A stretch of DNA of 63,861 nt, filler included, from Klebsormidium nitens (Eukaryota; Plantae; Klebsormidiophyceae), in the NCBI GenBank assembly GCA_000708835.1. It is 13 parts of 13 records of this genome, joined end to end, with 100 filler letters (N's around TTAATTAATTAA, not from the genome) between each part and the next. Parts side by side here need not be neighbours in the genome. Positions count along the whole stretch, not along the records: positions 8,793 to 17,603 come from DF238224.1; 12 more parts are not named here. One strand, 5' to 3'. A model generated the notes under the pieces. That model saw only the letters and a program-made list of their open reading frames with translations, was not told the DNA's origin and made no database searches. Made by a program: the position numbers and the translations under genes. The stretch's first letter is position 1; each line of letters starts with the position of its first letter. Positions 43 through 17,731 of this stretch are shown here, one piece after another.

Positions 43-965
43 CTCCTATTCCGTGCTGAGACTGTCGACGAGGGACCTGCCGACTACAGGACACGTCATG
101 AAGCAAAAGGCCCATGCGCTTCAAGGCAACTTCGCCCTAGGGTAAGTGCTGACATCTCAACCATAACACATGCCAATCAACCGCACGAAGCACAAGATCC
201 CCGAACCGCCCAGGATCTTCATGATGTCACTCAGGAAATTGCGATTCCCTATGGCAAATCTTCCGCGCAAGCTCCTCTACAAGTCAATTCTGCCTCAGAC
301 CAATCCCAACCAGAATTAGACCTGGTAACTAAGTCAGTTGCCGGCGTCACGGGCACAGACGCAACCGACTCTCACTTCCAAGGGACAGTTAAAGATGGCG
401 ACCTCCTAGGTGACGACCCGGAAATGGCCCCCATCCCTGATATTTGGTCTGATCACAACACAATACAATATCTGCAAGATAATTGTCTCTACCCAAGCCA
501 CGCCAGCCTCAAGGAACGGGACCGAATACGGCGAAGGGCACAGAGCTACAGGTTTGAAAACCATGCTCTCATGAAGCTGACCAATGATGGTATCTTAAAA
601 CGAGTACCGGCGCCCGAAGATAGGGCAGCCTTAGTCGCCGACATACACCGGCAACTAGGTTACTTCGGTGTAAGAAGAACTTCCTCCCTCTTAGAACCCA
701 CACATTGGTGGGTCGGAATGTACGAACAAATCGCGCAGCTAGTAGCTAGCTGTCAAGTGTGCGATCGAGTAAAGACCGGTTTCAATATCAAAGATTCAGT
801 ACTCAAACCTCTGCCGATCATGGGTTTAGGGTACCGGTGGAGTTGCGACCGTTTGCGTGACCCACCGGGACCACTTCCCCCATCAGCAAGTGACTGGATA
901 TCTCTACATTATGGTCATAATAGAACACTTTTCGAAGTGGCTGGAATTAGTTCCACTTCCCGATA
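43..965 (+). pseudogene. Gypsy pol, linker and integrase N-terminal half (frameshift near 895, then interrupted by a MITE)
   Basis: The frame of ORF 424-966 is open from 43. After RWSCD...GPLPPSAS the conserved GYLYIMVIIEHFSKWLELVPLPD continues in another frame (ORF 857-1051) up to the insertion. Confidence 0.85.
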
Positions 966-1713
966 GGGCGGTAGCACGGCTAGGCGTCCAACTTTCGACA
1001 AGAGCGCGTTTATCAAAACTTCTCGGATTTCTATTTTTTATAGTTCGTTAGGACCGTCTTGCTTAGTACTATATGTTGGGCCGCGGCCGAGTTCCAAAAT
1101 GTGTCGCCTGGCAGCCGCGCGACGCGGCCGCAATTTTTCAAAACCACACGTGCCAATGTCGCGTGGTTCAGCGCACGGTGATTTTGAAAATTTCTGCCCG
1201 GTTTTGGGGGCGCACCAAGTAAAACCGACCCTAGGCTACGGCTGGAAACACTCACATTCACAAAATCATAAAGTGCCCGGTTGGTCGGACTTCCGCCCGG
1301 TAGACCATTTAGTGCCGAAACGGCGAGTGGTGACCAAAGGGTGACGTCGGACCAGATTTTTTCGATCAATGTGTCATTGGACGCGGATTTTGACAGGCTT
1401 TCCAACGAATCCTGAACCGGCCGATTCTGACAAGATCTCAAGAAGTTATTAGGTGCAATCAGTGGGTAAATCTGACAACTGCCGTTTGGACGCTCGGTTC
1501 ACCGGGCGCGACAATCCGGCCGCCGGCTGCTGACGTCATCGGCCGCGCGGCGCGACCCCACAGGTCGATAGTTCGATTCATGAAGTTGACATACAAACTT
1601 TACATCGCTACTTTTGGACAAAATGCCACCAAGCTACGGCCTTTTGAACTTCTGCTTCACTGTTTTTTCCAGTATGGAAGCTAAAAGCTGGACGCCTAGC
1701 CGTGCTACTGCCC
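966..1713. mobile_element. 748-bp non-autonomous TIR element (MITE) inserted in the gypsy integrase
   Basis: Left TIR GGGCGGTAGCACGGCTAGGCGTCCAACTTT (966-995) matches the reverse complement of the right end (1684-1713) at 28/30. GATA is duplicated at 962-965 and 1714-1717. Removing the element and one GATA restores LPD-NTSKETAKALL. Confidence 0.93.
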
Positions 1714-8557: not shown

Positions 8558-9538
8558 TATTCTGCCTACCTCTGCCTCTACCTGTTCTGCAGTGCTTCCC
8601 CTTCGCGCTTCCCAAAGAAATTGTTCTTTGCGCCTTTCAATTGCGTTGCAATTGCATGCGAAGCTTGTTTGGCAATAGCAAACAAGAGAATTNNNNNNNN
8701 NNNNNNNNNNNNNNNNNNNNNNNNNNNNNNNNNNNNTTAATTAATTAANNNNNNNNNNNNNNNNNNNNNNNNNNNNNNNNNNNNNNNNNNNNGATCTTAT
8801 ATCTAGAAGCTTCGCATAAGAGTCTGAGTCTGCAGCGCGACGTGTCAGCCTAGAAGCTTCGGTGCTCGGCCGGCCATAAGCTTAGTCTCGAAAGCTTATC
8901 GGACGGTTCCCTCGCACGCGGTGCACGTGGGTCTTATCGGACGGTCACGCGGTGGAACAGTAACCCAGACACGTGTCGTGTAGTGATTCGATATATCAAA
9001 TAAGTCGATAGCGTATAATAACGGACGATGCGCGGCCGCGAGTTTGGCGCGCAGCCAGAAGTCGGTGCGCAGTCGTGCCGTTACATTATAACAGTTTTCG
9101 TCCAAAGTGTCGTGGGGTGCATGTAACGCTCCAAACGCACAGCGCGTTTAAATCCTGCTGAAACTCCCTAGGCGTACAGTATGCTGACCCATAAGCATCA
9201 CCAGCTCCCAAGGGTAGCAAGGAGCGGTCTAGGCGTGCCCCGTTGAATCACGGCATAGAGACCTCCATCAAAGAGCCCATCTTCGAGCTTCCCTGAAGCG
9301 CGATTGCACACTGTGCAGTGTACCAGCGTCGCTTGGATTTGGGCTGGAGGTCTTTGGCATTGCTTGGACACAGCAACGCTCCTTGCATCATTACCCAAAA
9401 GCGGACAAGTATTCAGCGGTACCAGGCATCGTAAGGTGCTTGGCGGCCACTGGATAGCCAGTTTACTCTGGTATTATTGCCATTTTATGCTTTTCTTGTT
9501 GTCCCCATTACATCACGGAGGCAATATTTTGGGCGCAT

Positions 9539-9853
9539 ATGGTAATAACTGTGCGTGACTGTATGGATGCATTGCTCACTATGTGTGTTATTGCGCTGAT
9601 CGTGCTCTCACTCATCGTTCTCCTCAACCGCCGCGAAGGCTTCATAGATGTAGATGGTACCGAGCGTGATGTGATACCGCTCAGGAAGGGGATGCGCTTT
9701 TTCCCTAAGAGGAGGTCCGATGCGGACACCGAAGGCCCACAGGCCTGTCGGACCATCTTGGGTGGTGGGTGGAGTTATGCAGGCTGGGAGCCAGCAGCTG
9801 ACAAACGAGATGGAGGCTTTTACAACTGCTTCCGAAAACATCGAAGGCGTTGA
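9539..9853 (+). CDS. Small membrane protein (N-terminal TM helix followed by REGF), NCLDV-like
   Basis: MDALLTMCVIALIVLSLIVLL-NRREGF; a TM helix followed by an E-G-F motif is a pattern I associate with small giant-virus membrane proteins. Start may be the ATG at 9563. Confidence 0.55.
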   Translation: MVITVRDCMDALLTMCVIALIVLSLIVLLNRREGFIDVDGTERDVIPLRKGMRFFPKRRSDADTEGPQACRTILGGGWSYAGWEPAADKRDGGFYNCFRKHRRR

Positions 9854-9860
9854 AGAGTAA

Positions 9861-10946
9861 TCAGTAGGAGACCGGGTCATAGTAGAGGCTAAAGCCGAGC
9901 TTAGCCAGCGCCTGTCGACCAACGAGTTCTGCATAGGGTGGGGGTATTGCTTGGGCAATGCTCTTGCCGGATGACAGCCAATCGATCTGCATAGCATCAG
10001 ACCACTCGGCAATGGTCCCACGCTTCTTGCCTGGCAGACCATAAACGGGAAAAAATCCGTCCAATGTTTGTGCGGTCGTGGCCGGAGGCGTGGCCGTGGC
10101 CGCCGGGCCACAGGCTGCAGGCCGTGCGTTTGTCTTGGGAGGTTGACCATCTTCTATGACCTCGACCGTATGCTTCAAGTCCCGCTCGATCTCTCCAATG
10201 GACCTGTATTTCACACCCGTAGGTGAAAAATAGTATAAGTCTGTAGTCCCGGCGCTCTTCCCACTCTTTCTCACTTGAAGCTTCTTTCGCCATTTATTCT
10301 CGGATGTTCCAATAAAGATTTGAAGAATGGGCAGCCTTTCGCCTTCCGACGGTAGCCTTTGACCTTCAGGCACAGACCTCACGCGACTTGCTTTTGGTGA
10401 TCTGTCTCCATGTGATTTCCCATTGTGGTCGCACTTGCGGTCCATCACCTCAAGGCCAAAGTTTGTCTCGAAGAGTCTGTGTCGAAATACCTTCAGTTTC
10501 GTGAACATGGTGCCACACAGCATCGTGGGGTTGTCGAGCTCATTGATTGCGCCATGCACGTTTTCGATAACATAGAGCTTGCCACTAGCACGGAGCTTCT
10601 CACGCGTCGGGGGAATGAGATTTACGTGGTTCCAAAGATGACCGTACCGCTCACGTTGTGCAGAAGGGATGATTCCCGTGTGGGCTTGGCAAGGCGGTGA
10701 CGACCAAACAAAGTCTGCTTGTGTGAGATCTGCATCCAAAGCAGACATCTGGATAAAAGGGAATGGGTATTCGGGCTGCGGTTGTATGTCACATCCGATC
10801 ACATCGAAACCAGCCATGAAAAGCCCCATGCTAACTCCACTGCCACCGCAATATAGGTCGATTGCGAGTGGGCGCCTGGGTTCCCCCGTTGGACTGATAG
10901 GAACGCAGCGCTCTCGGATGGAAGCCAAGCGTTCGTCCATTGTCAC
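9861..10946 (-). CDS. C5 cytosine DNA methyltransferase (phage-type) with an inserted methyl-CpG-binding domain (MBD)
   Basis: Motif I DLYCGGSG, motif IV SPPCQ, motif VI IENV, motif VIII FRHRLFE, C-terminal AMQIDW...QAIPPPY. Residues 219-257 (10176-10292), WRKKLQVRKSGKSAGTTDLYYFSPTGVKYRSIGEIERDL, align without gaps to the MBD core. ORF intact, 361 aa. Confidence 0.92.
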   Translation of the reverse strand: MTMDERLASIRERCVPISPTGEPRRPLAIDLYCGGSGVSMGLFMAGFDVIGCDIQPQPEYPFPFIQMSALDADLTQADFVWSSPPCQAHTGIIPSAQRERYGHLWNHVNLIPPTREKLRASGKLYVIENVHGAINELDNPTMLCGTMFTKLKVFRHRLFETNFGLEVMDRKCDHNGKSHGDRSPKASRVRSVPEGQRLPSEGERLPILQIFIGTSENKWRKKLQVRKSGKSAGTTDLYYFSPTGVKYRSIGEIERDLKHTVEVIEDGQPPKTNARPAACGPAATATPPATTAQTLDGFFPVYGLPGKKRGTIAEWSDAMQIDWLSSGKSIAQAIPPPYAELVGRQALAKLGFSLYYDPVSY

Positions 10947-11045
10947 TTCCGAGTGATAATCATGCGTGCTCGGAAAACGACCAGATGATACTCAGTCCAA
11001 TGCTTTCTGCAAGACTGGGAGGCAACACCTTCAGAACAGGATTTT

Positions 11046-11591
11046 TTGTCCGACACCAGCATGATGTTGCGCTGTGGTGTGCTGCCTCGCACCTGGTGGA
11101 AGATGCATAGTGTTTGCAGAAGAAGTTTCGACAGAAGGGGCTGCTGCACCTCCCAGCTAAAGGAGGACCAGTGGGTATACACCATCAAGTGCAACTCGAG
11201 ATTCTATGGAAGCACGCACTTGCTGGATTCTGTTCCCATGAGCTCCGTTGTAGCATTCGAGAAACCAGAGGTTGCAGAGCGCATGCGCAATGATCTCCAA
11301 TACATCACAGATTACCAACAAGGCCGATTGCCATCCTACTCCATAGACCTAGCCACATCTGTACATGAGAACCATGTGAACGCGCCACTTCCGAATGACT
11401 CCAAGCTGGAGGTATATCCGGTCATGCTAGGCTTTCTTGCCGGATATATAAACTCCAACTGCCTCGACCTAGACGTCATCATGGGTGACCCCGACGAAGG
11501 CACCAGCAAAATTGCAAGTTATCCTCGTTTTTCCGACAGGCGCGTGTGTGAAACCCATTTCGAACGCCTATTCAAATCAAAAAATGTCTAA
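11046..11591 (+). CDS. Hypothetical protein, divergent from the MTase
   Basis: Open 181-aa frame in a gene-dense contig, stopping 12 nt before the next ATG; no motif recognised. Confidence 0.55.
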   Translation: MSDTSMMLRCGVLPRTWWKMHSVCRRSFDRRGCCTSQLKEDQWVYTIKCNSRFYGSTHLLDSVPMSSVVAFEKPEVAERMRNDLQYITDYQQGRLPSYSIDLATSVHENHVNAPLPNDSKLEVYPVMLGFLAGYINSNCLDLDVIMGDPDEGTSKIASYPRFSDRRVCETHFERLFKSKNV

Positions 11592-11603
11592 GAATGTATC
11601 ATC

Positions 11604-11981
11604 ATGGTCTTTGGCAACGCAACAGATGCAGTCAACAGCGCACTGGGCTTTTGTGCTGCTGCTGGAACTACGCTCGGTCTCAGGTACACTTTGGCGCACA
11701 ACAGTACCGGTGCTGTGGCTTTTCTAGGCATTTCGATTGCATCGGATGGCTCAGTGTTGATGCAGTGGTTTGATATCACCTTGCTCAACGATGCACCTTG
11801 TTCAACAGACATCACTCCGTTCAGCTTCAAAGAGTTTGAAGGAAGCACGGATTCGGTTGCCAATTTCAAGGCCAATGGAGTGACACTCCTCCTCAATCCG
11901 CCCTCACCCTGGACCGTTGATGAGTTTCAGATCTTGAATTCGTACTTCCAAACGCCGGTAACACTGGGCTACCAAGCATAA
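11604..11981 (+). CDS. Hypothetical protein (125 aa, predicted beta-rich)
   Basis: ATG start, packed between co-oriented ORFs with 12- and 17-nt gaps. Confidence 0.6.
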   Translation: MVFGNATDAVNSALGFCAAAGTTLGLRYTLAHNSTGAVAFLGISIASDGSVLMQWFDITLLNDAPCSTDITPFSFKEFEGSTDSVANFKANGVTLLLNPPSPWTVDEFQILNSYFQTPVTLGYQA

Positions 11982-11998
11982 GTTCTTCATAATTCTCA

Positions 11999-12997
11999 AT
12001 GGCGCACAAGCTCTTCAAGAGCCACTTGCTGATAGACTCTTCCAACCGAAATGTGGCACTTTACCCGAGTGCTAGCTCCTACCAGATCACGCTCCCAGAA
12101 GTCATCAAGGACGTCGTGGGCATCACTCTCATCCAGTGCGCCTTCCCAAAGTCCCAACCAATCATCAACGACCAGGGTTGCTTCATCGATTTTCAAGAAC
12201 AGGGAAACCCAAGCATGTTCAGCATACGGTTGGACACGGGTAACGTCTCGAGTAAGACATTAATCTCTCTTCTGAATTCCGGTTTCTCTGGAGGACCTTG
12301 GACCAACACCTACGTGGCAGAAATCAATTCACTCACGAGCAAGCTGTCCATCACGGCCAACGGCGATGCCGCTGTACCCTTTCGGCTCCTCTTCCAAAGT
12401 GGTCCCAACGCTTCTGCCAGCCTGGCCAACATCCTTGGCTTCGCGGGCGAGGATTCCCCCTTTGCGTTAGTACAGACGGGGCAGCGGCACGTGAACCTTT
12501 CAGGGAGCCTCTTCTGCGACATTTCCATCGAGGAGCTTCCACGGAACGCCACGAAGCAGGTCATCTTCCGTCAGGGCGGAAGGATGGGCTTTCGCAACAT
12601 TGTTGCCCGCATCCCCCTCGATGTAAACGTTGGGCAGATCAAGTACCATGACGTGGATCAGTGCAACAAGCTCACAAACTACTTTGAGCCAACCAAGTTG
12701 GACAGGCTCACAGTCTCTCTCACGAATGACCAGGGCTTGCCGTACTTGCCTGACGGCTTGGATCACAGCATCATGTTTGAGGTCACTCAACTCGGCAGAA
12801 CTTGGACGCGAGAACCCAAGAAGAGACAGGGGGTGCAAAGCAGTTCCCTCCCCTCACCTTCCCAGGAAGTGCTGCACGTAACGGCTGAGGGTCCCAGGGA
12901 CAGAACGCGTGCGCCCATTGTGGCAGCAGCAGCCTTCTTGGGGTTGGGAGGAGCAGCTTATTACCTGCTGGGCAAAGAACCAAAGGAAGCGCTCTGA
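11999..12997 (+). CDS. Putative penton / minor capsid protein (single jelly-roll, NCLDV/Polinton-like-virus type) with C-terminal hydrophobic helix
   Basis: LIDSSNR..LYPSASSYQITLP..IKDVVGITL....FP at the N-terminus, then ILGF, ARIPL and LDRLTVSLTNDQG....DGLDHSIMFEV. This pattern resembles giant-virus penton-family proteins. Ends APIVAAAAFLGLGGAAYYLLGK. Confidence 0.55.
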   Translation: MAHKLFKSHLLIDSSNRNVALYPSASSYQITLPEVIKDVVGITLIQCAFPKSQPIINDQGCFIDFQEQGNPSMFSIRLDTGNVSSKTLISLLNSGFSGGPWTNTYVAEINSLTSKLSITANGDAAVPFRLLFQSGPNASASLANILGFAGEDSPFALVQTGQRHVNLSGSLFCDISIEELPRNATKQVIFRQGGRMGFRNIVARIPLDVNVGQIKYHDVDQCNKLTNYFEPTKLDRLTVSLTNDQGLPYLPDGLDHSIMFEVTQLGRTWTREPKKRQGVQSSSLPSPSQEVLHVTAEGPRDRTRAPIVAAAAFLGLGGAAYYLLGKEPKEAL

Positions 12998-13065
12998 CCG
13001 GCGCAATCGTTCAGAAAGCTTGTCAAAAAGAGTGACCCGTTACAAGGGCTGGAGCCCGCCCTTTG

Positions 13066-13650
13066 ATGTCAGATTACAATCAATTTCTCAATCAGTATGA
13101 AGATGCCCCGGAAGACGGGATAGGCAGTACGTTCCAATCCGTGCTGCCTACAAAGAATCTGATTGCAAATGTCGATGTGTCCCATCCGTCCCCGAATCCA
13201 CTGTTGGAAAACAATACAGTTGGGAGAGAGGTGGGTGATTACTTTGGCATCACGATTGGAGGCCCCTTGAGCTACCTGGGGTTCGCACCGGGGTCGGAGA
13301 GCAGCACGGCCAATCCTGGAGACACATATGTATTTGTGGGACAGGATCTCGGGGACAACGGGAGCAGCTGGTCCAAGATCCGGATCCCAATTCCTGCCGG
13401 ATGCATCGGTCCTGATAACCTCACCGCTGCCTCCGTCACCAGTGCAAAGCTTGCCCCTCAGACTACCATCAGGATCCAAAACAATGGGGACTCGGTAGAC
13501 CTGTCCTCAGATTCCGTGAACGCAATCATCTTTGGCAACAAAACGGACGGTGCATGGAGGTGCGTGGCTACGAAAGGGGCCATGCTCTTTCAATGCTATT
13601 CGGTGCCCGCGAGTGCTTGGATCACGTGTGGTGCATTTCAGAGCCCATAG
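13066..13650 (+). CDS. Putative virion fibre-like / structural protein
   Basis: ATG at 13066; SVTSAKLA segment and C-terminal IIFGNKTDGAWRC....MLFQ......W resemble fibre/tail-like proteins of large DNA viruses and phages. Confidence 0.4.
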   Translation: MSDYNQFLNQYEDAPEDGIGSTFQSVLPTKNLIANVDVSHPSPNPLLENNTVGREVGDYFGITIGGPLSYLGFAPGSESSTANPGDTYVFVGQDLGDNGSSWSKIRIPIPAGCIGPDNLTAASVTSAKLAPQTTIRIQNNGDSVDLSSDSVNAIIFGNKTDGAWRCVATKGAMLFQCYSVPASAWITCGAFQSP

Positions 13651-13683
13651 AAGCTCACCTTTGATGGAGCGACATAAGCCGCC

Positions 13684-14487
13684 TCAAATACCCGCTGAAA
13701 AGGTGTCTCTGAAGATCAGGTAATTGTTACCGTCAAACTCTGTCACGGAGAGGATTGCAAAGACAATCACCTTGAAAACCCCTCTGTGTTCCGAGAGAAC
13801 TTTTCGAAACACTGCAGCAACGTCCGCGGGTGGGTTATGCCAGGCACCGCAACCAAGTGCACCCAAGACCAGAGAGTCGTGCCCCTTGTCCACTCCCACC
13901 TGGAGTATTAGGCGTACCTTGTTCTCAAGGATCCTTCTGTCGGCTTCAGACAAATGACATTCCCCTCTACCATCTCCTGACGGATATTCGAGCTGCGGGT
14001 ACTTCAAACCAGGGCATGCAATGAAGTCCAGCTTGAATGGTCGCTCGAGGAATGCGTACTCGGCTGCCTCACTCGCCCTAAACACGGTGATGCCTGGGGA
14101 ATAGATTGCCTCGTTGGCAGCTATTGGATACAGACGGCCATTGTGTAGACTCGAGCAATAATTTGTCCGCCGAAATAGAGACTCCTCCTGAGCACCAGAG
14201 CCCGTTGCCACGCAGCCTCCCGGGAAACAGTCGTCTGCGAGGTTCAGGACCATGGGTCTGTATCCTTCCTCCTGCAACCGGCGTGCAGCCACTATGGTGT
14301 CCTCTTTTGATACTCTAATTTCCGTATCATCGTGCCTTTGCGGCGGTGATTGGTCAGGGCGGAGGATGTGCTTTTCGCACTTTGGCGGGCGTGCGAGCCT
14401 TTCTGAAATGCCTTTGGTTTCTTCCCAGACCTTGATGCGCACGTCCACGATGTGAGGTTTCTGGTTTCTCTTCTGCTCCATGAACAT
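13684..14487 (-). CDS. TIGR02452-family (bacterial-type PARG) macrodomain ADP-ribose glycohydrolase
   Basis: DTIVAARRL, VLNLAD..FPGG..ATGSGAQEESLFRRTN (PARG QEE signature), IYSPGITVFR, LVLGALGCGAWHNPP..VA..F. Confidence 0.88.
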   Translation of the reverse strand: MFMEQKRNQKPHIVDVRIKVWEETKGISERLARPPKCEKHILRPDQSPPQRHDDTEIRVSKEDTIVAARRLQEEGYRPMVLNLADDCFPGGCVATGSGAQEESLFRRTNYCSSLHNGRLYPIAANEAIYSPGITVFRASEAAEYAFLERPFKLDFIACPGLKYPQLEYPSGDGRGECHLSEADRRILENKVRLILQVGVDKGHDSLVLGALGCGAWHNPPADVAAVFRKVLSEHRGVFKVIVFAILSVTEFDGNNYLIFRDTFSAGI

Positions 14488-14597
14488 TGTGCAGGCTGTT
14501 AGTCAGTCGACCTTACTTTTATCCGACATTGAACGCACACGACGTTCTGCCACTGCGCTGAGGTTTGTCACCAGAGGATGCAGATTGTGTCCGCTAA

Positions 14598-14837
14598 ATG
14601 TCTCGCATTATTACCAGAGGCATGCCTCCTTCAAAGGGGTGCCAGAAGCCTTTGCTTTCAAGACTCGTTGAGAGGCTACTTGAGGACCGCGAACGTGCTT
14701 CAGAGCTGCAAAACGTGATTGAGAATCTGAAACGTGAGAATGAGAAGCTCAAACATGAAAAAGAGGCAGCCTTGAGGCAGAGTAGAGCTGAGGATGAGTG
14801 CTTGTCCTGCCAAGTCTTGAGCTGTAGGGTGCAGTGA
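14598..14837 (+). CDS. Small coiled-coil protein ending in a CaaX-like motif (CRVQ)
   Basis: 79 aa, heptad-like ELQNVIENLKRENEKLKHE; its stop overlaps the next start (GTGATG). Confidence 0.45.
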   Translation: MSRIITRGMPPSKGCQKPLLSRLVERLLEDRERASELQNVIENLKRENEKLKHEKEAALRQSRAEDECLSCQVLSCRVQ

Positions 14838-15028
14838 TGCGTTCTTTGGTACATTACAAGACTCATGACTCTCTAGAGGACATGGGTGTCTCTGCGTGGC
14901 TGCTCGCCAGGATGCGTGCGTACCTATTGGCAGCTGCTTCCAACAACTCCATAGTTCGAGACACAAACGTGGCGCTCACACTGGATTTGCACACGCAGCA
15001 GCAGCTATCCCCTGCTGACTATGCCTGA
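14834..15028 (+). CDS. Small hypothetical protein
   Basis: 64 aa; start overlaps the upstream stop codon. Confidence 0.35.
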   Translation: MMRSLVHYKTHDSLEDMGVSAWLLARMRAYLLAAASNNSIVRDTNVALTLDLHTQQQLSPADYA

Positions 15029-15307
15029 TTACTGGAAGTCCCCCATGAATTTACATGCGCCCTACCAATAGAGGGGTCATGGATAGCTTACAGAGATGGC
15101 AGCATCATCACCTACTATCGCGGAGACCTTGCAAAGGCCAAGAAGTACGCCATGCATCTGTGCCGTCCATGCACGCGTCAAAAAACGGTGCTTTCGCTGT
15201 CTTGTGTGATGAAGGAGGAAGGCCAGCGGCCCGCACGACAATGTATGTCTGGGATTTGTCCAATCCTATTGACCAGAGGAACTCAACAGAGGTCATGCCT
15301 CCTGGAC

Positions 15308-16135
15308 CTATGCAGTGGATTCTTTGAGCAACGCTTGTCCTATCAGTTTCAGCTCTGCCAGAGAGTACTTGTTGTCGGCTGCGGCCTTCCTAAAGAGCTC
15401 CGCTGCGCGCGCCTTGTCCTTGGCCACCCCTATGCCTCTGAGGTAGCACAGTCCCAGTCTGTACTGTGCCAGGACGTACCCCTGGTCGGCTGCCTTTGCA
15501 AAGAGCTCTGCAGCGCGCGCCTTGTTCTCGGCTACCCCGATGCTTTTGAGGTAGCACAGTCCTAGTCTGTAATCCGCCTCATCCTTGGGCACCTCGGTGC
15601 CTCTGAGGTAGCACAGTGCCAGTTCATACTCGGCCCAGGCGAAGCACCGCGACACTTCGTACTCCACCAGGATGAATCCCTCATAGTCCTCCTCGTCCTT
15701 GTCTTCAAAGGAGCGCGAATCCTGATTTAACCACCAATCTAGCCACCAACTGGTGGCCCCAGAAAACTTGAAGATCCCCCTCAAGCCGGCCTCCTTGGAC
15801 ACCTCATCCTCGTCCTCAGGGCCATTGGCGTAGCCGGCTTCCTGGAGGCGCCTAAATGTCATGGCAAACCCCCCATCGGCGGCCTTCCTCAAGAGCTCCA
15901 CTGCGCGCGCATAGTCCTGGACCACCCCACCGCCTGTTGTATAGTTAAGCCCCAAGAGCATTTGCGCTCTCCAATCCCACTTCTTAGCGGCCTTTTCGAG
16001 AGGCTCCACCAGACGTGCCTCGTCCTTGGGCATCTCATAGCAGCATCCCCCGAGATACTGGTCGTATTTGGCAGCAAACGTGGCAATCTTTTCCGCCAAT
16101 TCCATGATGCCCAAGCTTGTCTTCCTCCAGGGCAC
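15308..16135 (-). CDS. Sel1-like repeat protein
   Basis: Repeats AQMLLGLNYTTGGGVVQDYARAVELLRKAAD and AQYRLGLCYLRGIGVAKDKARAAELFRKAA; a 108-bp (36-aa) DNA repeat is visible at about 15400-15570. One repeat looks internally deleted (VPKDEA/DYRLG). Confidence 0.88.
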   Translation of the reverse strand: MPWRKTSLGIMELAEKIATFAAKYDQYLGGCCYEMPKDEARLVEPLEKAAKKWDWRAQMLLGLNYTTGGGVVQDYARAVELLRKAADGGFAMTFRRLQEAGYANGPEDEDEVSKEAGLRGIFKFSGATSWWLDWWLNQDSRSFEDKDEEDYEGFILVEYEVSRCFAWAEYELALCYLRGTEVPKDEADYRLGLCYLKSIGVAENKARAAELFAKAADQGYVLAQYRLGLCYLRGIGVAKDKARAAELFRKAAADNKYSLAELKLIGQALLKESTA

Positions 16136-16608
16136 AAACTTATGACCAGAGGCGCTCTACTTTGGAAAGAGATTGCTCCGCTGGAGGCTGGGCCATGTCA
16201 TCTTGGGCTCTTGAAGGTGACACTCTGGAGGCCTGCCCCTGCCACGTCATACACAAGTGCCAAGCATGACACGTTGGCGACAAGTTCCTGCCACGCTAGC
16301 AGAGTGACAGACAACTGCCAGTGGGATGGCAGAAGGGAATTCTAACTACCTGAAGCGGGTCCTTTTTAAGCCATTCACGACGGACGGTGGCAGAGAAGGC
16401 CCTCACAGGGTTGGGATCCCACCCGTAGAACGCCGGCGGTTTTGTAGACAGCTAAAGCCCGCCCGGAATGCGAAACGACGCCTACTCGAGCCGCTACAGA
16501 GCTCCCTGAGCTCCTCGTATGAGAAGAAGAGTCACCCAATCGTCTTTTACTGGCAGCAGGAGGGCGGGGAGGTTACACAAAGGTCGAAGCGAAGGTCTTT
16601 GAGGAACC

Positions 16609-16992
16609 TTGCTTGACCCAGGTAGGTCGGGCACCGGGATGGAATCATGGAGGGAAGACATCTTACAGCAGCTTGTGATGGCAAAGGAAGAACGAGATGC
16701 AGCGCTGCAAGAAAAGAAATTCTTGAAAGATGCATTGCTGGACGCGCTGAAAAAAAGTGCGGACACTGAGAAGCTGAGAGTCGAGTCGGAAGCTAGGCTC
16801 AAAGTGATGACAGCAGAGAATAGCACGCTGCAAGGAATGATCGAGGCAACAAGGAAAAGAGCAAGAGACTGCGTGGCTAGGGCACAGATCGCAAAGGAGC
16901 ACCATGTGTGGCTCATGCAACAGCAGATGGCTGATTCTGAAAAGAGTCGTTCACAACAGAAGATGGCAGACTGGTTGACACTAGGCGGATGA
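16609..16992 (+). CDS. Coiled-coil hypothetical protein
   Basis: 127-aa ORF (likely ATG at 16639 or 16648), continuous heptad-like E/K/L/A composition. Confidence 0.5.
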   Translation: MLDPGRSGTGMESWREDILQQLVMAKEERDAALQEKKFLKDALLDALKKSADTEKLRVESEARLKVMTAENSTLQGMIEATRKRARDCVARAQIAKEHHVWLMQQQMADSEKSRSQQKMADWLTLGG

Positions 16993-17085
16993 GAACTCCT
17001 GAGAAACCGGGATCTCTCATTGCATTGGAGTAGGAACTCTGTACACTGATTCAGGTCGGCACCAACTTGAAAACCACGTGGCATT

Positions 17086-17460
17086 CTACTCCTCACCTGC
17101 AACTTGCTCAGCAGTGCAGTATTTGGTGAGCATGTACCTCTCGAAGGATGCCCTGTTTTTCCATCCAACGTAACCACCCAGCGCACGTCTCTTCTCCAAT
17201 ATGGTTTGCAACACCAGATTCTGCATTGCCGTCACCTCCGCATCATTTGTGGGTGCCTTCTCTCGTGTTAGGCCGGGAGATACTGGGTCTGCCCTCACAT
17301 CCGCAATCTCGGTTGCAATCACTTTTTCGATTGCAATACATTCCATCGTTCTGTGTACACCATGTTCCTCGAGTGCCTCCCAGATGCCATCAGCTATGTC
17401 AAAAGCTAGCTGTTGTTTAGGGGCCGTGAGATCTTCGACGGTCCGGAACACATCATCCAT
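17086..17460 (-). CDS. Hypothetical protein (124 aa)
   Basis: ATG-initiated open frame, predicted helical; no motif recognised. Confidence 0.5.
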   Translation of the reverse strand: MDDVFRTVEDLTAPKQQLAFDIADGIWEALEEHGVHRTMECIAIEKVIATEIADVRADPVSPGLTREKAPTNDAEVTAMQNLVLQTILEKRRALGGYVGWKNRASFERYMLTKYCTAEQVAGEE

Positions 17461-17731
17461 TCAAGTTACTAATGCATGAGGCTAATATCCATGTTTCTAA
17501 GTACGTACGCACATGATATGTGGAACATGCTATGTGCTAAATGCATCCTGTGTACTCGAGGAGCGTCGAAGCCGAGCCCTCCGGATGAAGCGGCGCTGAA
17601 CAANNNNNNNNNNNNNNNNNNNNNNNNNNNNNNNNNNNNNNNNNNNNTTAATTAATTAANNNNNNNNNNNNNNNNNNNNNNNNNNNNNNNNNNNNNNNNN
17701 NNNCACAGATGGGGTCAGAAAACCCACCTCA

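Follow-up and report, generated by a model that had tools for sequence, protein, structure and literature searches.

The stretch of DNA analysed here (the window) comprises 63,861 nucleotides of Klebsormidium nitens sequence, in which 13 parts are joined end to end with filler between them. The part at window positions 8793-17603 (the piece) corresponds base for base to scaffold DF238224.1 (8811 bp) of assembly GCA_000708835.1, and all gene coordinates given below count along the whole window. On its minus strand, at 9861-10946, the piece carries an intact open reading frame (ORF) of 361 codons, as had been claimed, with no strand named, in an earlier note made from the DNA alone; both the ORF list and the translation bear this out. 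The encoded protein is predicted to be a C5 cytosine methyltransferase with an embedded methyl-CpG-binding domain (MBD). The frame opens with GTG at 10946, and an ATG is found two codons inside, at 10940. This ATG was preferred as the start because the relatives begin there in the alignment, and the product is likely to be a protein of 359 amino acids (aa) encoded from ATG 10940 to the stop codon at 9861-9863. Residue numbers such as Cys86 and R226 follow the 361-codon frame, and the boundaries of the parts of the protein (aa 1-173 and so on) are counted from the ATG. Three gene models, two of them spliced, are on record for DF238224.1. None of them covers the methyltransferase ORF, no gene with a methyltransferase-MBD product is on record for this scaffold, and the fusion gene is unannotated in the assembly. 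The features of the piece, together with the interrupted copies of the fusion gene found in relatives, are collected in Table 1.

Table 1. Position of the fusion gene, its predicted parts and its neighbours along the window, and of the interrupted copies on contigs of relatives.
Feature	Position	Strand	Basis or remark
Whole gene, predicted C5 cytosine methyltransferase with embedded MBD	9861..10940	-	ORF list, translation, start by alignment
N-terminal catalytic part, aa 1-173, motifs I, IV, VI, VIII	10422..10940	-	phrog_363, family profile against PDB, Foldseek
Linker 1, aa 174-203, sequence variable, partly predicted disordered	10332..10421	-	pLDDT, pairwise identity
Predicted methyl-CpG-binding domain, aa 204-262, MBD2/3-like	10155..10331	-	PF01429, PDB matches, AlphaFold/Foldseek
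Linker 2, aa 263-294, Pro/Ala/Thr-rich, low complexity, predicted disordered	10059..10154	-	pLDDT, pairwise identity
C-terminal catalytic part, aa 295-359, motif IX-X region (AMQIDW ... QAIPP)	9864..10058	-	alignment to insert-free small methyltransferases
ORF without Pfam family, divergent from the methyltransferase gene	11046..11591	+	tblastx 75%, 11160-11495 against L171 2030-2365
DUF5901 gene	11999..12997	+	PF19254, E 3.4e-11; 99% identical to KFL_012750010 (Klebsormidium nitens); syntenic relatives on L171
ORF, function not assigned, kept on L171	13063..13650	+	tblastx 83%, 13129-13668 against L171 7053-7592
Microbial-type PARG / TIGR02452 (macro-like) gene	13684..14487	-	PF10021, E 1.2e-21; TIGR02452, E 5e-31
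Sel1-repeat gene	15308..16135	-	PF08238, E 1.1e-28
Stopped fusion copies of relatives	L003:9239-10534, L004:1064-2359, L087:6806-8230		one in-frame stop per lineage

The motifs listed for a C5 methyltransferase in the earlier note, DLYCGGSG, SPPCQ (with Cys86), ENV, RHR, AMQIDW and QAIPP, were all found in the translation. The catalytic cysteine of motif IV (Pro-Cys) is encoded at 10689-10691. This cysteine, the ENV of motif VI and both arginines of motif VIII are invariant in 60 family members, the window copy included, and the motif IV cysteine is likewise invariant in the 8 fusion members. Motif I, the glycine loop that binds S-adenosylmethionine, is present, with a serine in the window copy at one position where at least 90% of the 60 members have a glycine.

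Comparison of the protein with PF00145, proposed beforehand as a check on its methyltransferase part, gave no match even at expectation values (E) up to 10, and an NCBIfam scan of the fusion protein found nothing. The identity as a C5 methyltransferase was borne out instead by PHROG 363 (phrog_363, 'DNA methyltransferase'), by relatives that do match PF00145, by the family profile and by the fold. PHROG 363 matches at E 1.6e-22, with residues 22-347 placed on only 166 profile positions, from which an insert of about 160 aa is deduced. The profile of the 60 family members, when compared with the PDB, matched the C5 methyltransferases 3g7u, DNMT2, M.HaeIII and M.HhaI. The full-length AlphaFold model showed a mean predicted local distance difference test score (pLDDT) of 85.5 and a predicted template modelling score of 0.70, and the best 50 Foldseek matches to it were all C5 methyltransferases (prophage 3g7u, M.HaeIII, MET1, DNMT1 and DNMT3A/B), DNMT3 being superposed with a root-mean-square deviation (rmsd) of 4.0-5 Å over about 190 columns. 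The helices at 311-348, in the C-terminal catalytic part, were modelled with a pLDDT of 94-98, and this part aligns with the C-termini of the small methyltransferases that lack the insert. Taken as a whole, the catalytic part is predicted to be a minimal phage-type C5 cytosine methyltransferase.

The claim of an MBD in the insert was confirmed by a match to PF01429 at aa 218-262 (E 2.4e-10, 40.3 bits, gathering score 21). PF01429 is the sole Pfam family matched by the fusion protein, and its threshold is also passed by the relatives P0001-P0005, P0121 and P0128. A phmmer comparison of the protein with the PDB gave 29 matches, every one of them an MBD protein, the best being MBD2 (1.4e-8), to which about 50% of 46 aligned residues are identical. 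The inserts of the window copy and of seven relatives, taken from the DNA, were combined in an alignment (A5), and its profile also gave 29 matches in the PDB, all to MBDs: MBD2 (6e-15), MBD1 (5e-13), MBD3 (1.5e-12), Arabidopsis MBD5/6 (1e-10), MeCP2 (4e-8) and MBD4 (8e-7). An AlphaFold model of the insert alone (pLDDT 83) was matched by Foldseek to MBDs at all ranks from 1 to 35, with an rmsd of 1.3-1.8 Å and 50-54% identity for MBD2; the weaker matches were the TAM domains of BAZ2A/B and then the SETDB2 MBD. The profile match and the MBD fold, the absence of which had been named beforehand as grounds for rejecting the domain, were thus both found.

MeCP2, the counterpart chosen in the earlier note, does match (3c2i, E about 5e-4), but the closest solved MBD is that of MBD2. 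The matched stretches, query 216-253 and chain 25-62, are of equal length with no net gap, in agreement with the gap-free alignment described before. The five residues put forward as contacts with methylated CpG (mCpG), R226, D236, Y238, R248 and E252, are identical to those of MBD2, and their pairing with MeCP2 R111, D121, Y123, R133 and E137 fits the offsets only if the 3c2i chain starts at MeCP2 residue 77, which we take to be the case. In all 8 full-length fusion proteins, whose overall identity to the window protein is only 39-70%, there is no variation at a Trp, both arginine fingers, an Asp, the Tyr-Tyr pair, a Ser, a Glu and one more Arg. The Tyr retained here is the residue that is changed in the weakly methyl-selective MBD3. 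As judged from its sequence and modelled fold, the insert comprises a whole methyl-CpG-binding domain of the MBD2/3 type, and the residues conserved in it suggest that it would be selective for methylated CpG.

In C5 methyltransferases the target-recognition domain sits between motif VIII and motifs IX-X. The MBD was found at this very site, between motif VIII (RHR) and motifs IX-X (AMQIDW/QAIPP), as had been claimed; in the insert-free relatives only about 40-45 residues lie there. Mean pairwise identity among the 8 fusion proteins was 0.60 for the N-terminal catalytic part, 0.29 for linker 1 (23-30 aa), 0.44 for the MBD, 0.16 for linker 2 (6-47 aa) and 0.61 for the C-terminal catalytic part, and therefore the MBD is constrained and the linkers are not. 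In the full model pLDDT fell below 50 at 182-190 in linker 1 and at 275-293 in linker 2. Since the linkers are short, the reach of the MBD is limited to the neighbourhood of the active site, and the MBD is predicted to be a conserved module attached at the rim of the DNA cleft by short tethers that are not under constraint.

An insert placed exactly at the target-recognition position of a parent family with so few residues there could also serve as a plain DNA clamp, replacing the target-recognition domain and supplying no more than affinity for DNA in general, or for CpG, independently of methylation, in which case the protein would be an ordinary de novo viral methyltransferase. Linker 2 of one member, with only 6 aa, would put the MBD right beside the catalytic cleft, and the TAM and SETDB domains are among the weaker structural matches; methylation makes little or no difference to DNA binding by MBD3, by the TAM domains of BAZ2A/B or by the MBDs of SETDB proteins. 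The clamp is nevertheless unlikely, since the MBD2 methyl-contact residues are all identical here and invariant in the family, including the Tyr replaced in MBD3, and since both the sequence and the fold are closest to the mCpG-selecting MBD2, with the TAM and SETDB types more distant.

A large protein collection contained 1031 relatives of the fusion protein, nearly all of 205-260 aa, many of which have a precomputed PF00145 match and the Joint Genome Institute (JGI) name 'DNA (cytosine-5)-methyltransferase 1'. About 1000 relatives, of roughly 210-230 aa, are without the insert. HMMER over 1.84 billion representatives gave 3696 relatives at E up to 0.001, and only a handful of them carry an MBD. 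The MBD-bearing relatives are P0001 to P0005, P0121 (389 aa), P0126 (337 aa) and the fragment P0128; P0139 combines a PF00145 match with a weak MBD match, and the inserts of P0122 and P0125 are degenerate. The earlier note had allowed that many characterised homologues of the same architecture might already exist. About ten protein clusters were found, and all of them are unnamed or entered as 'hypothetical protein'. The proteins P0123 (453 aa) and P0124 (447 aa) gave a match in four stretches with PF00145 in the second half, and they appear to be tandem double methyltransferases without an MBD.

In a neighbour-joining analysis of the catalytic-domain columns only, the 11 insert-bearing sequences formed one split in 82 of 100 bootstraps. 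This clade test concerns the unrooted split; the midpoint root fell inside the clade, so a midpoint-rooted test of monophyly is misleading. The split points to a gain of the MBD in a single insertion event, after which it would have been retained, and the fusion is best described, from these alignments, as one clade within a family of phage and viral methyltransferases that are roughly 210 aa long. The insert was absent from 323 cultured-phage records, mostly of actinophages, in which the match was always in two pieces around it. No fusion was present among the relatives listed from IMG/VR (at least 368) or from JGI metagenomes (at least 274), all of them insert-free small methyltransferases that likewise matched in two pieces, which points to rarity and not to absence. 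A search of the large protein collection with the MBD region, based on shared words and limited by length, returned only P0001 and says nothing on the lineage that donated the MBD.

DF238224.1 is one short scaffold of a draft assembly, and an apparent fusion could in such a case be made from two domains of different genes by assembly or gene calling. This explanation deserves practically no weight: the gene is a single continuous ORF, and the same domain order, with the MBD flanked on both sides, recurs at 39-70% identity on independent contigs from at least 7 samples in two repositories, by which an artefact is ruled out.

The virus-like nature of the DNA, another claim of the earlier note, was borne out by the DUF5901 gene of the piece, by synteny with the related contig L171 and by the occurrence of relatives on giant-virus-like contigs. 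The 8.8-kb piece itself has none of the hallmark giant-virus genes, only the DUF5901 gene, and topoisomerase II, mRNA triphosphatase, capping enzyme and TBP genes are found on the contigs of the relatives. At loci L001 and L002 the gene for P0002 is flanked by a protein kinase on one side and topoisomerase II on the other, and an ABC1 kinase is also close by; a near-identical virus type (L003/L004) adds an mRNA triphosphatase, a TBP-like gene, a thioredoxin and a YqaJ nuclease; and P0139 (L087) has a capping-enzyme gene and ubiquitin hydrolase genes near. The contig that encodes P0009, among the closest insert-free relatives, is 47 kb long and also carries zf-MYND and DUF5856 genes and one for an N6/N4 methyltransferase. 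Judged by their gene content, these contigs look like giant viruses of eukaryotes and not like phages. The only gene common to the window and the loci of the relatives is the methyltransferase gene. Neither around the gene in the window nor beside the relatives was a nuclease family found, that is, no cognate endonuclease such as a restriction-modification system would have. No recognisable host gene was found on the 8811-bp scaffold. Phycodnavirus-like core genes of nucleocytoplasmic large DNA viruses have been reported from Klebsormidium genomes and transcriptomes (PMC5294986).

L171, which comes from a separate sequencing run, shares three syntenic ORFs with the window at 75-83% identity. 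At 158-1096 (+), upstream of these three ORFs and at about the place that the fusion occupies in the window, L171 encodes a canonical C5 methyltransferase of 312 aa (PF00145, 183 bits) that is 25% identical to the fusion protein. The cytosine methyltransferases thus differ among relatives of this virus.

The fusion gene is interrupted in two of the lineages. In both, the L003/L004 copy and the L087 copy, a single in-frame stop breaks the gene and frameshifts are absent; the L003/L004 copy is 97.3% identical in nucleotides to the intact copy of L001. Reassignment of the stop codons was ruled out, since the same stops end ordinary genes on those contigs. Between the copies of L001 and L003 there are 19 nonsynonymous and 9 synonymous codon differences, which suggests that this pair is under relaxed constraint. 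On L087 a ubiquitin-hydrolase gene was called as two adjacent ORFs, and this contig may be a decaying element.

The methylome of K. nitens shows CG methylation on active gene bodies and transposons and CHG plus CHH methylation on silent elements (PMC5890265). Giant endogenous viral elements with methylated genes have been described in K. nitens, and genes of viral origin were reported to be methylated and silent (PMC12344493); DF238224.1 is not mentioned in the supplements of that work. The ratio of observed to expected CpG was 0.77 in the window scaffold (TpG 1.23, CpA 1.25), 0.78 in L085 (TpG 1.23, CpA 1.18), 0.93 in L171, 1.01 in L084 (TpG 0.99, CpA 1.10) and 1.12 in L001 and L003 (TpG 0.93-0.94, CpA 0.94-0.95). 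The strongest depletion of CpG in the piece was found at 14793-16292 (0.62). Low CpG together with high TpG and CpA in the K. nitens copy would be the signature of CpG methylation and fits a genome that methylates its DNA; as to integration into a host chromosome, the CpG depletion is only suggestive.

These data also bear on whether the K. nitens copy is a silent relic, that is, a methylated, untranscribed and drifting leftover of a giant virus, endogenised or associated, with only the members of free viruses functional. Such a state would agree with the reported silence of viral genes in this alga (PMC12344493), with the CpG depletion of the scaffold relative to the related contig L171, with the serine at the near-invariant glycine position of motif I and with the stops already present in two relatives. 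The 359 codons, however, contain no stop or frameshift, all the other catalytic residues and the key residues of the MBD are intact, and the neighbouring ORFs are intact and closely packed. A relic is a serious possibility, if somewhat short of an even chance; it would concern the window copy only and is compatible with any mechanism proposed for the family.

For the family as a whole, a read-write model is on balance just favoured, in which the MBD docks on mCpG and the core methylates nearby cytosines, keeping the viral DNA methylated. In this model the MBD would dock on a CpG that already carries 5-methylcytosine (5mC), and tethers of 6-47 residues would hold the catalytic core within roughly one helical turn of it. 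The core would then methylate cytosines that are still unmethylated, either on the partner strand or at sites close by, so that methylation would be copied after replication and spread locally, in a read-write loop within one polypeptide. Two geometries can be envisaged: the MBD could read the major groove of the same site whose partner cytosine flips into the active site, or it could read a neighbouring site. The likely use would be that viral DNA, free or integrated, stays methylated once seeded, and the fusion enzyme itself, a second viral C5 methyltransferase or the host could do the seeding. Methylation of the virus's own DNA is the preferred use and has two precedents, the methylation of almost every CpG in iridovirus genomes by a viral DNMT (PMC10899263) and the canonical C5 methyltransferase of L171. 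The MBD identity and the novelty of the fusion both withstood the checks that could have overturned them, and docking followed by methylation keeps the conditional standing that it had in the earlier note. A more far-reaching version, in which the protein would be a self-contained maintenance methyltransferase of a giant-virus family, giving heritable CpG methylation independent of host DNMT1/UHRF1, is doubtful; the preference for hemimethylated CpG that it calls for is assumed from the architecture.

Several observations weigh against the read-write model. MBDs bind symmetric mCpG best, and the core may target a sequence other than CpG. CpG depletion is absent from the viral contigs L001 and L003, which argues against long-standing heavy CpG methylation there. 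The window copy may be weakened by the exchange of Gly for Ser in motif I. Finally, the two stopped relatives and the 19 against 9 codon differences between L001 and L003 indicate that the gene is probably dispensable or decaying in some lineages.

Free viral contigs that carry the gene and show no CpG depletion would be expected if the virus's own DNA were not the main substrate. The MBD could in that case bring the viral enzyme to host mCpG, where further methylation would silence host genes, competing mobile elements or resident viral elements during infection. CG methylation is available for this on the bodies of active genes and on silent transposons of K. nitens (PMC5890265), and giant viruses do act on host 5mC, as does the viral TET of a punuivirus element in Chlamydomonas (PMC13692296). 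An action on the host is nonetheless improbable: it rests on the same presumed methyl-specific binding, and it does not explain why a minimal enzyme without any other targeting module would suffice.

Both parts of the protein, a small phage-type C5 methyltransferase and an MBD2/3-type MBD, are known, and their natural combination was not found described: the earlier note had named no C5 methyltransferase-MBD fusion, and a full-text search of the literature likewise found no natural DNMT-MBD fusion. The small phage-type C5 methyltransferases (PHROG 363; phages of Mycobacterium, Gordonia and Streptomyces) have the same core motifs and 40-57% identity over the matched parts, and their closest insert-free members are also found on giant-virus-like contigs (P0009); they differ in having no insert. 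The insert shares with the MBD2/MBD3-type MBDs of eukaryotes the contact residues, the level of identity given above and a matching fold. In eukaryotes, however, the MBD is a terminal module of chromatin adaptors (MBD1, MBD2, MBD3 and MeCP2), whereas here it would lie inside the methyltransferase fold. Other MBD fusions are known with a glycosylase (MBD4), with SET domains (SETDB1/2) and in bromodomain proteins (BAZ2A/B).

A reader embedded in a C5 methyltransferase domain is known from the plant chromomethylases (CMT3/ZMET2), in which a chromodomain and a BAH domain read H3K9me2, forming a self-reinforcing loop. The embedded reader is common to both, but in the fusion protein the mark read would be 5mC, the core is of the phage type and the point of insertion differs. 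In DNMT1 with UHRF1, two large multi-domain proteins, an SRA reader recognises CpG in the methylated or hemimethylated state and directs methylation of the partner strand; the proposed logic is the same, but here it would be realised by one protein of about 40 kDa with an MBD. The DNMT of vertebrate iridoviruses, also encoded by giant viruses, methylates almost every CpG of the viral genome, 96% in one fish iridovirus (PMC10899263). Methylation of the viral genome would be common to these iridoviruses and the present family, with no reader domain reported for the iridovirus enzyme. Arthropod Copia retrotransposons have captured an MBD that is thought to guide integration (PMC6673714, as cited in PMC11244446). 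As far as that account goes, a selfish element has acquired a host-type MBD in both cases, presumably for contact with methylated DNA, joined there to retrotransposon proteins and not to a methyltransferase. The fusion enzyme has its mirror image in the viral TET carried by the punuivirus element of Chlamydomonas (PMC13692296).

According to recent censuses, viral and 'orphan' DNMTs have no companion domains, and these censuses were made with PF00145 (PMC11244446; PMC12344493). Since PF00145 misses the fusion protein, the published censuses would have missed it too, and the family has so far been invisible as a result of PF00145-based surveys and of the missing annotation in the K. nitens assembly. 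The coupling of a reader to a writer underlies the inheritance of methylation patterns, and the known systems need large multi-domain enzymes or two proteins; a minimal C5 methyltransferase joined to an mCpG reader in a natural protein of about 40 kDa would be simpler than any such module known so far. In giant-virus DNA 5mC is contested: hosts silence endogenous elements, viral TET erases the mark, and a viral enzyme that reads and extends it would add a third strategy. A maintenance enzyme, if true, would be the writing counterpart of the recently described viral TET erasers. Modules of this kind may be of interest for compact epigenome editing or synthetic epigenetic memory.

The piece is densely filled with about ten intron-free intact ORFs on both strands (the principal ones are given in Table 1), and given these packed continuous ORFs the eukaryotic gene models of DF238224.1 look like artefacts on DNA of viral type. 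Nothing convincing was found as a common promoter motif upstream of the ten ORFs of the piece, and neither tRNAs nor non-coding repeats were found in it apart from the Sel1 repeat units. The direct repeats at 15381-15968 (60-90 nucleotides, 69-84% identity) are coding units of the Sel1 gene and not a non-coding array. IMG/VR scans with the DUF5901 and PARG-like neighbours gave nothing. For the DUF5901 protein only three relatives (99%, 76% and 61%) were found at E up to 0.001 among 5.8 billion proteins, a sign that the lineage is thinly sampled. On L084 the gene at 460-1488, beside the fusion methyltransferase, weakly resembles an ADP-ribosyltransferase family (DRAT, 5e-4), and together with the PARG-like gene of the window this may reflect an ADP-ribosylation theme.

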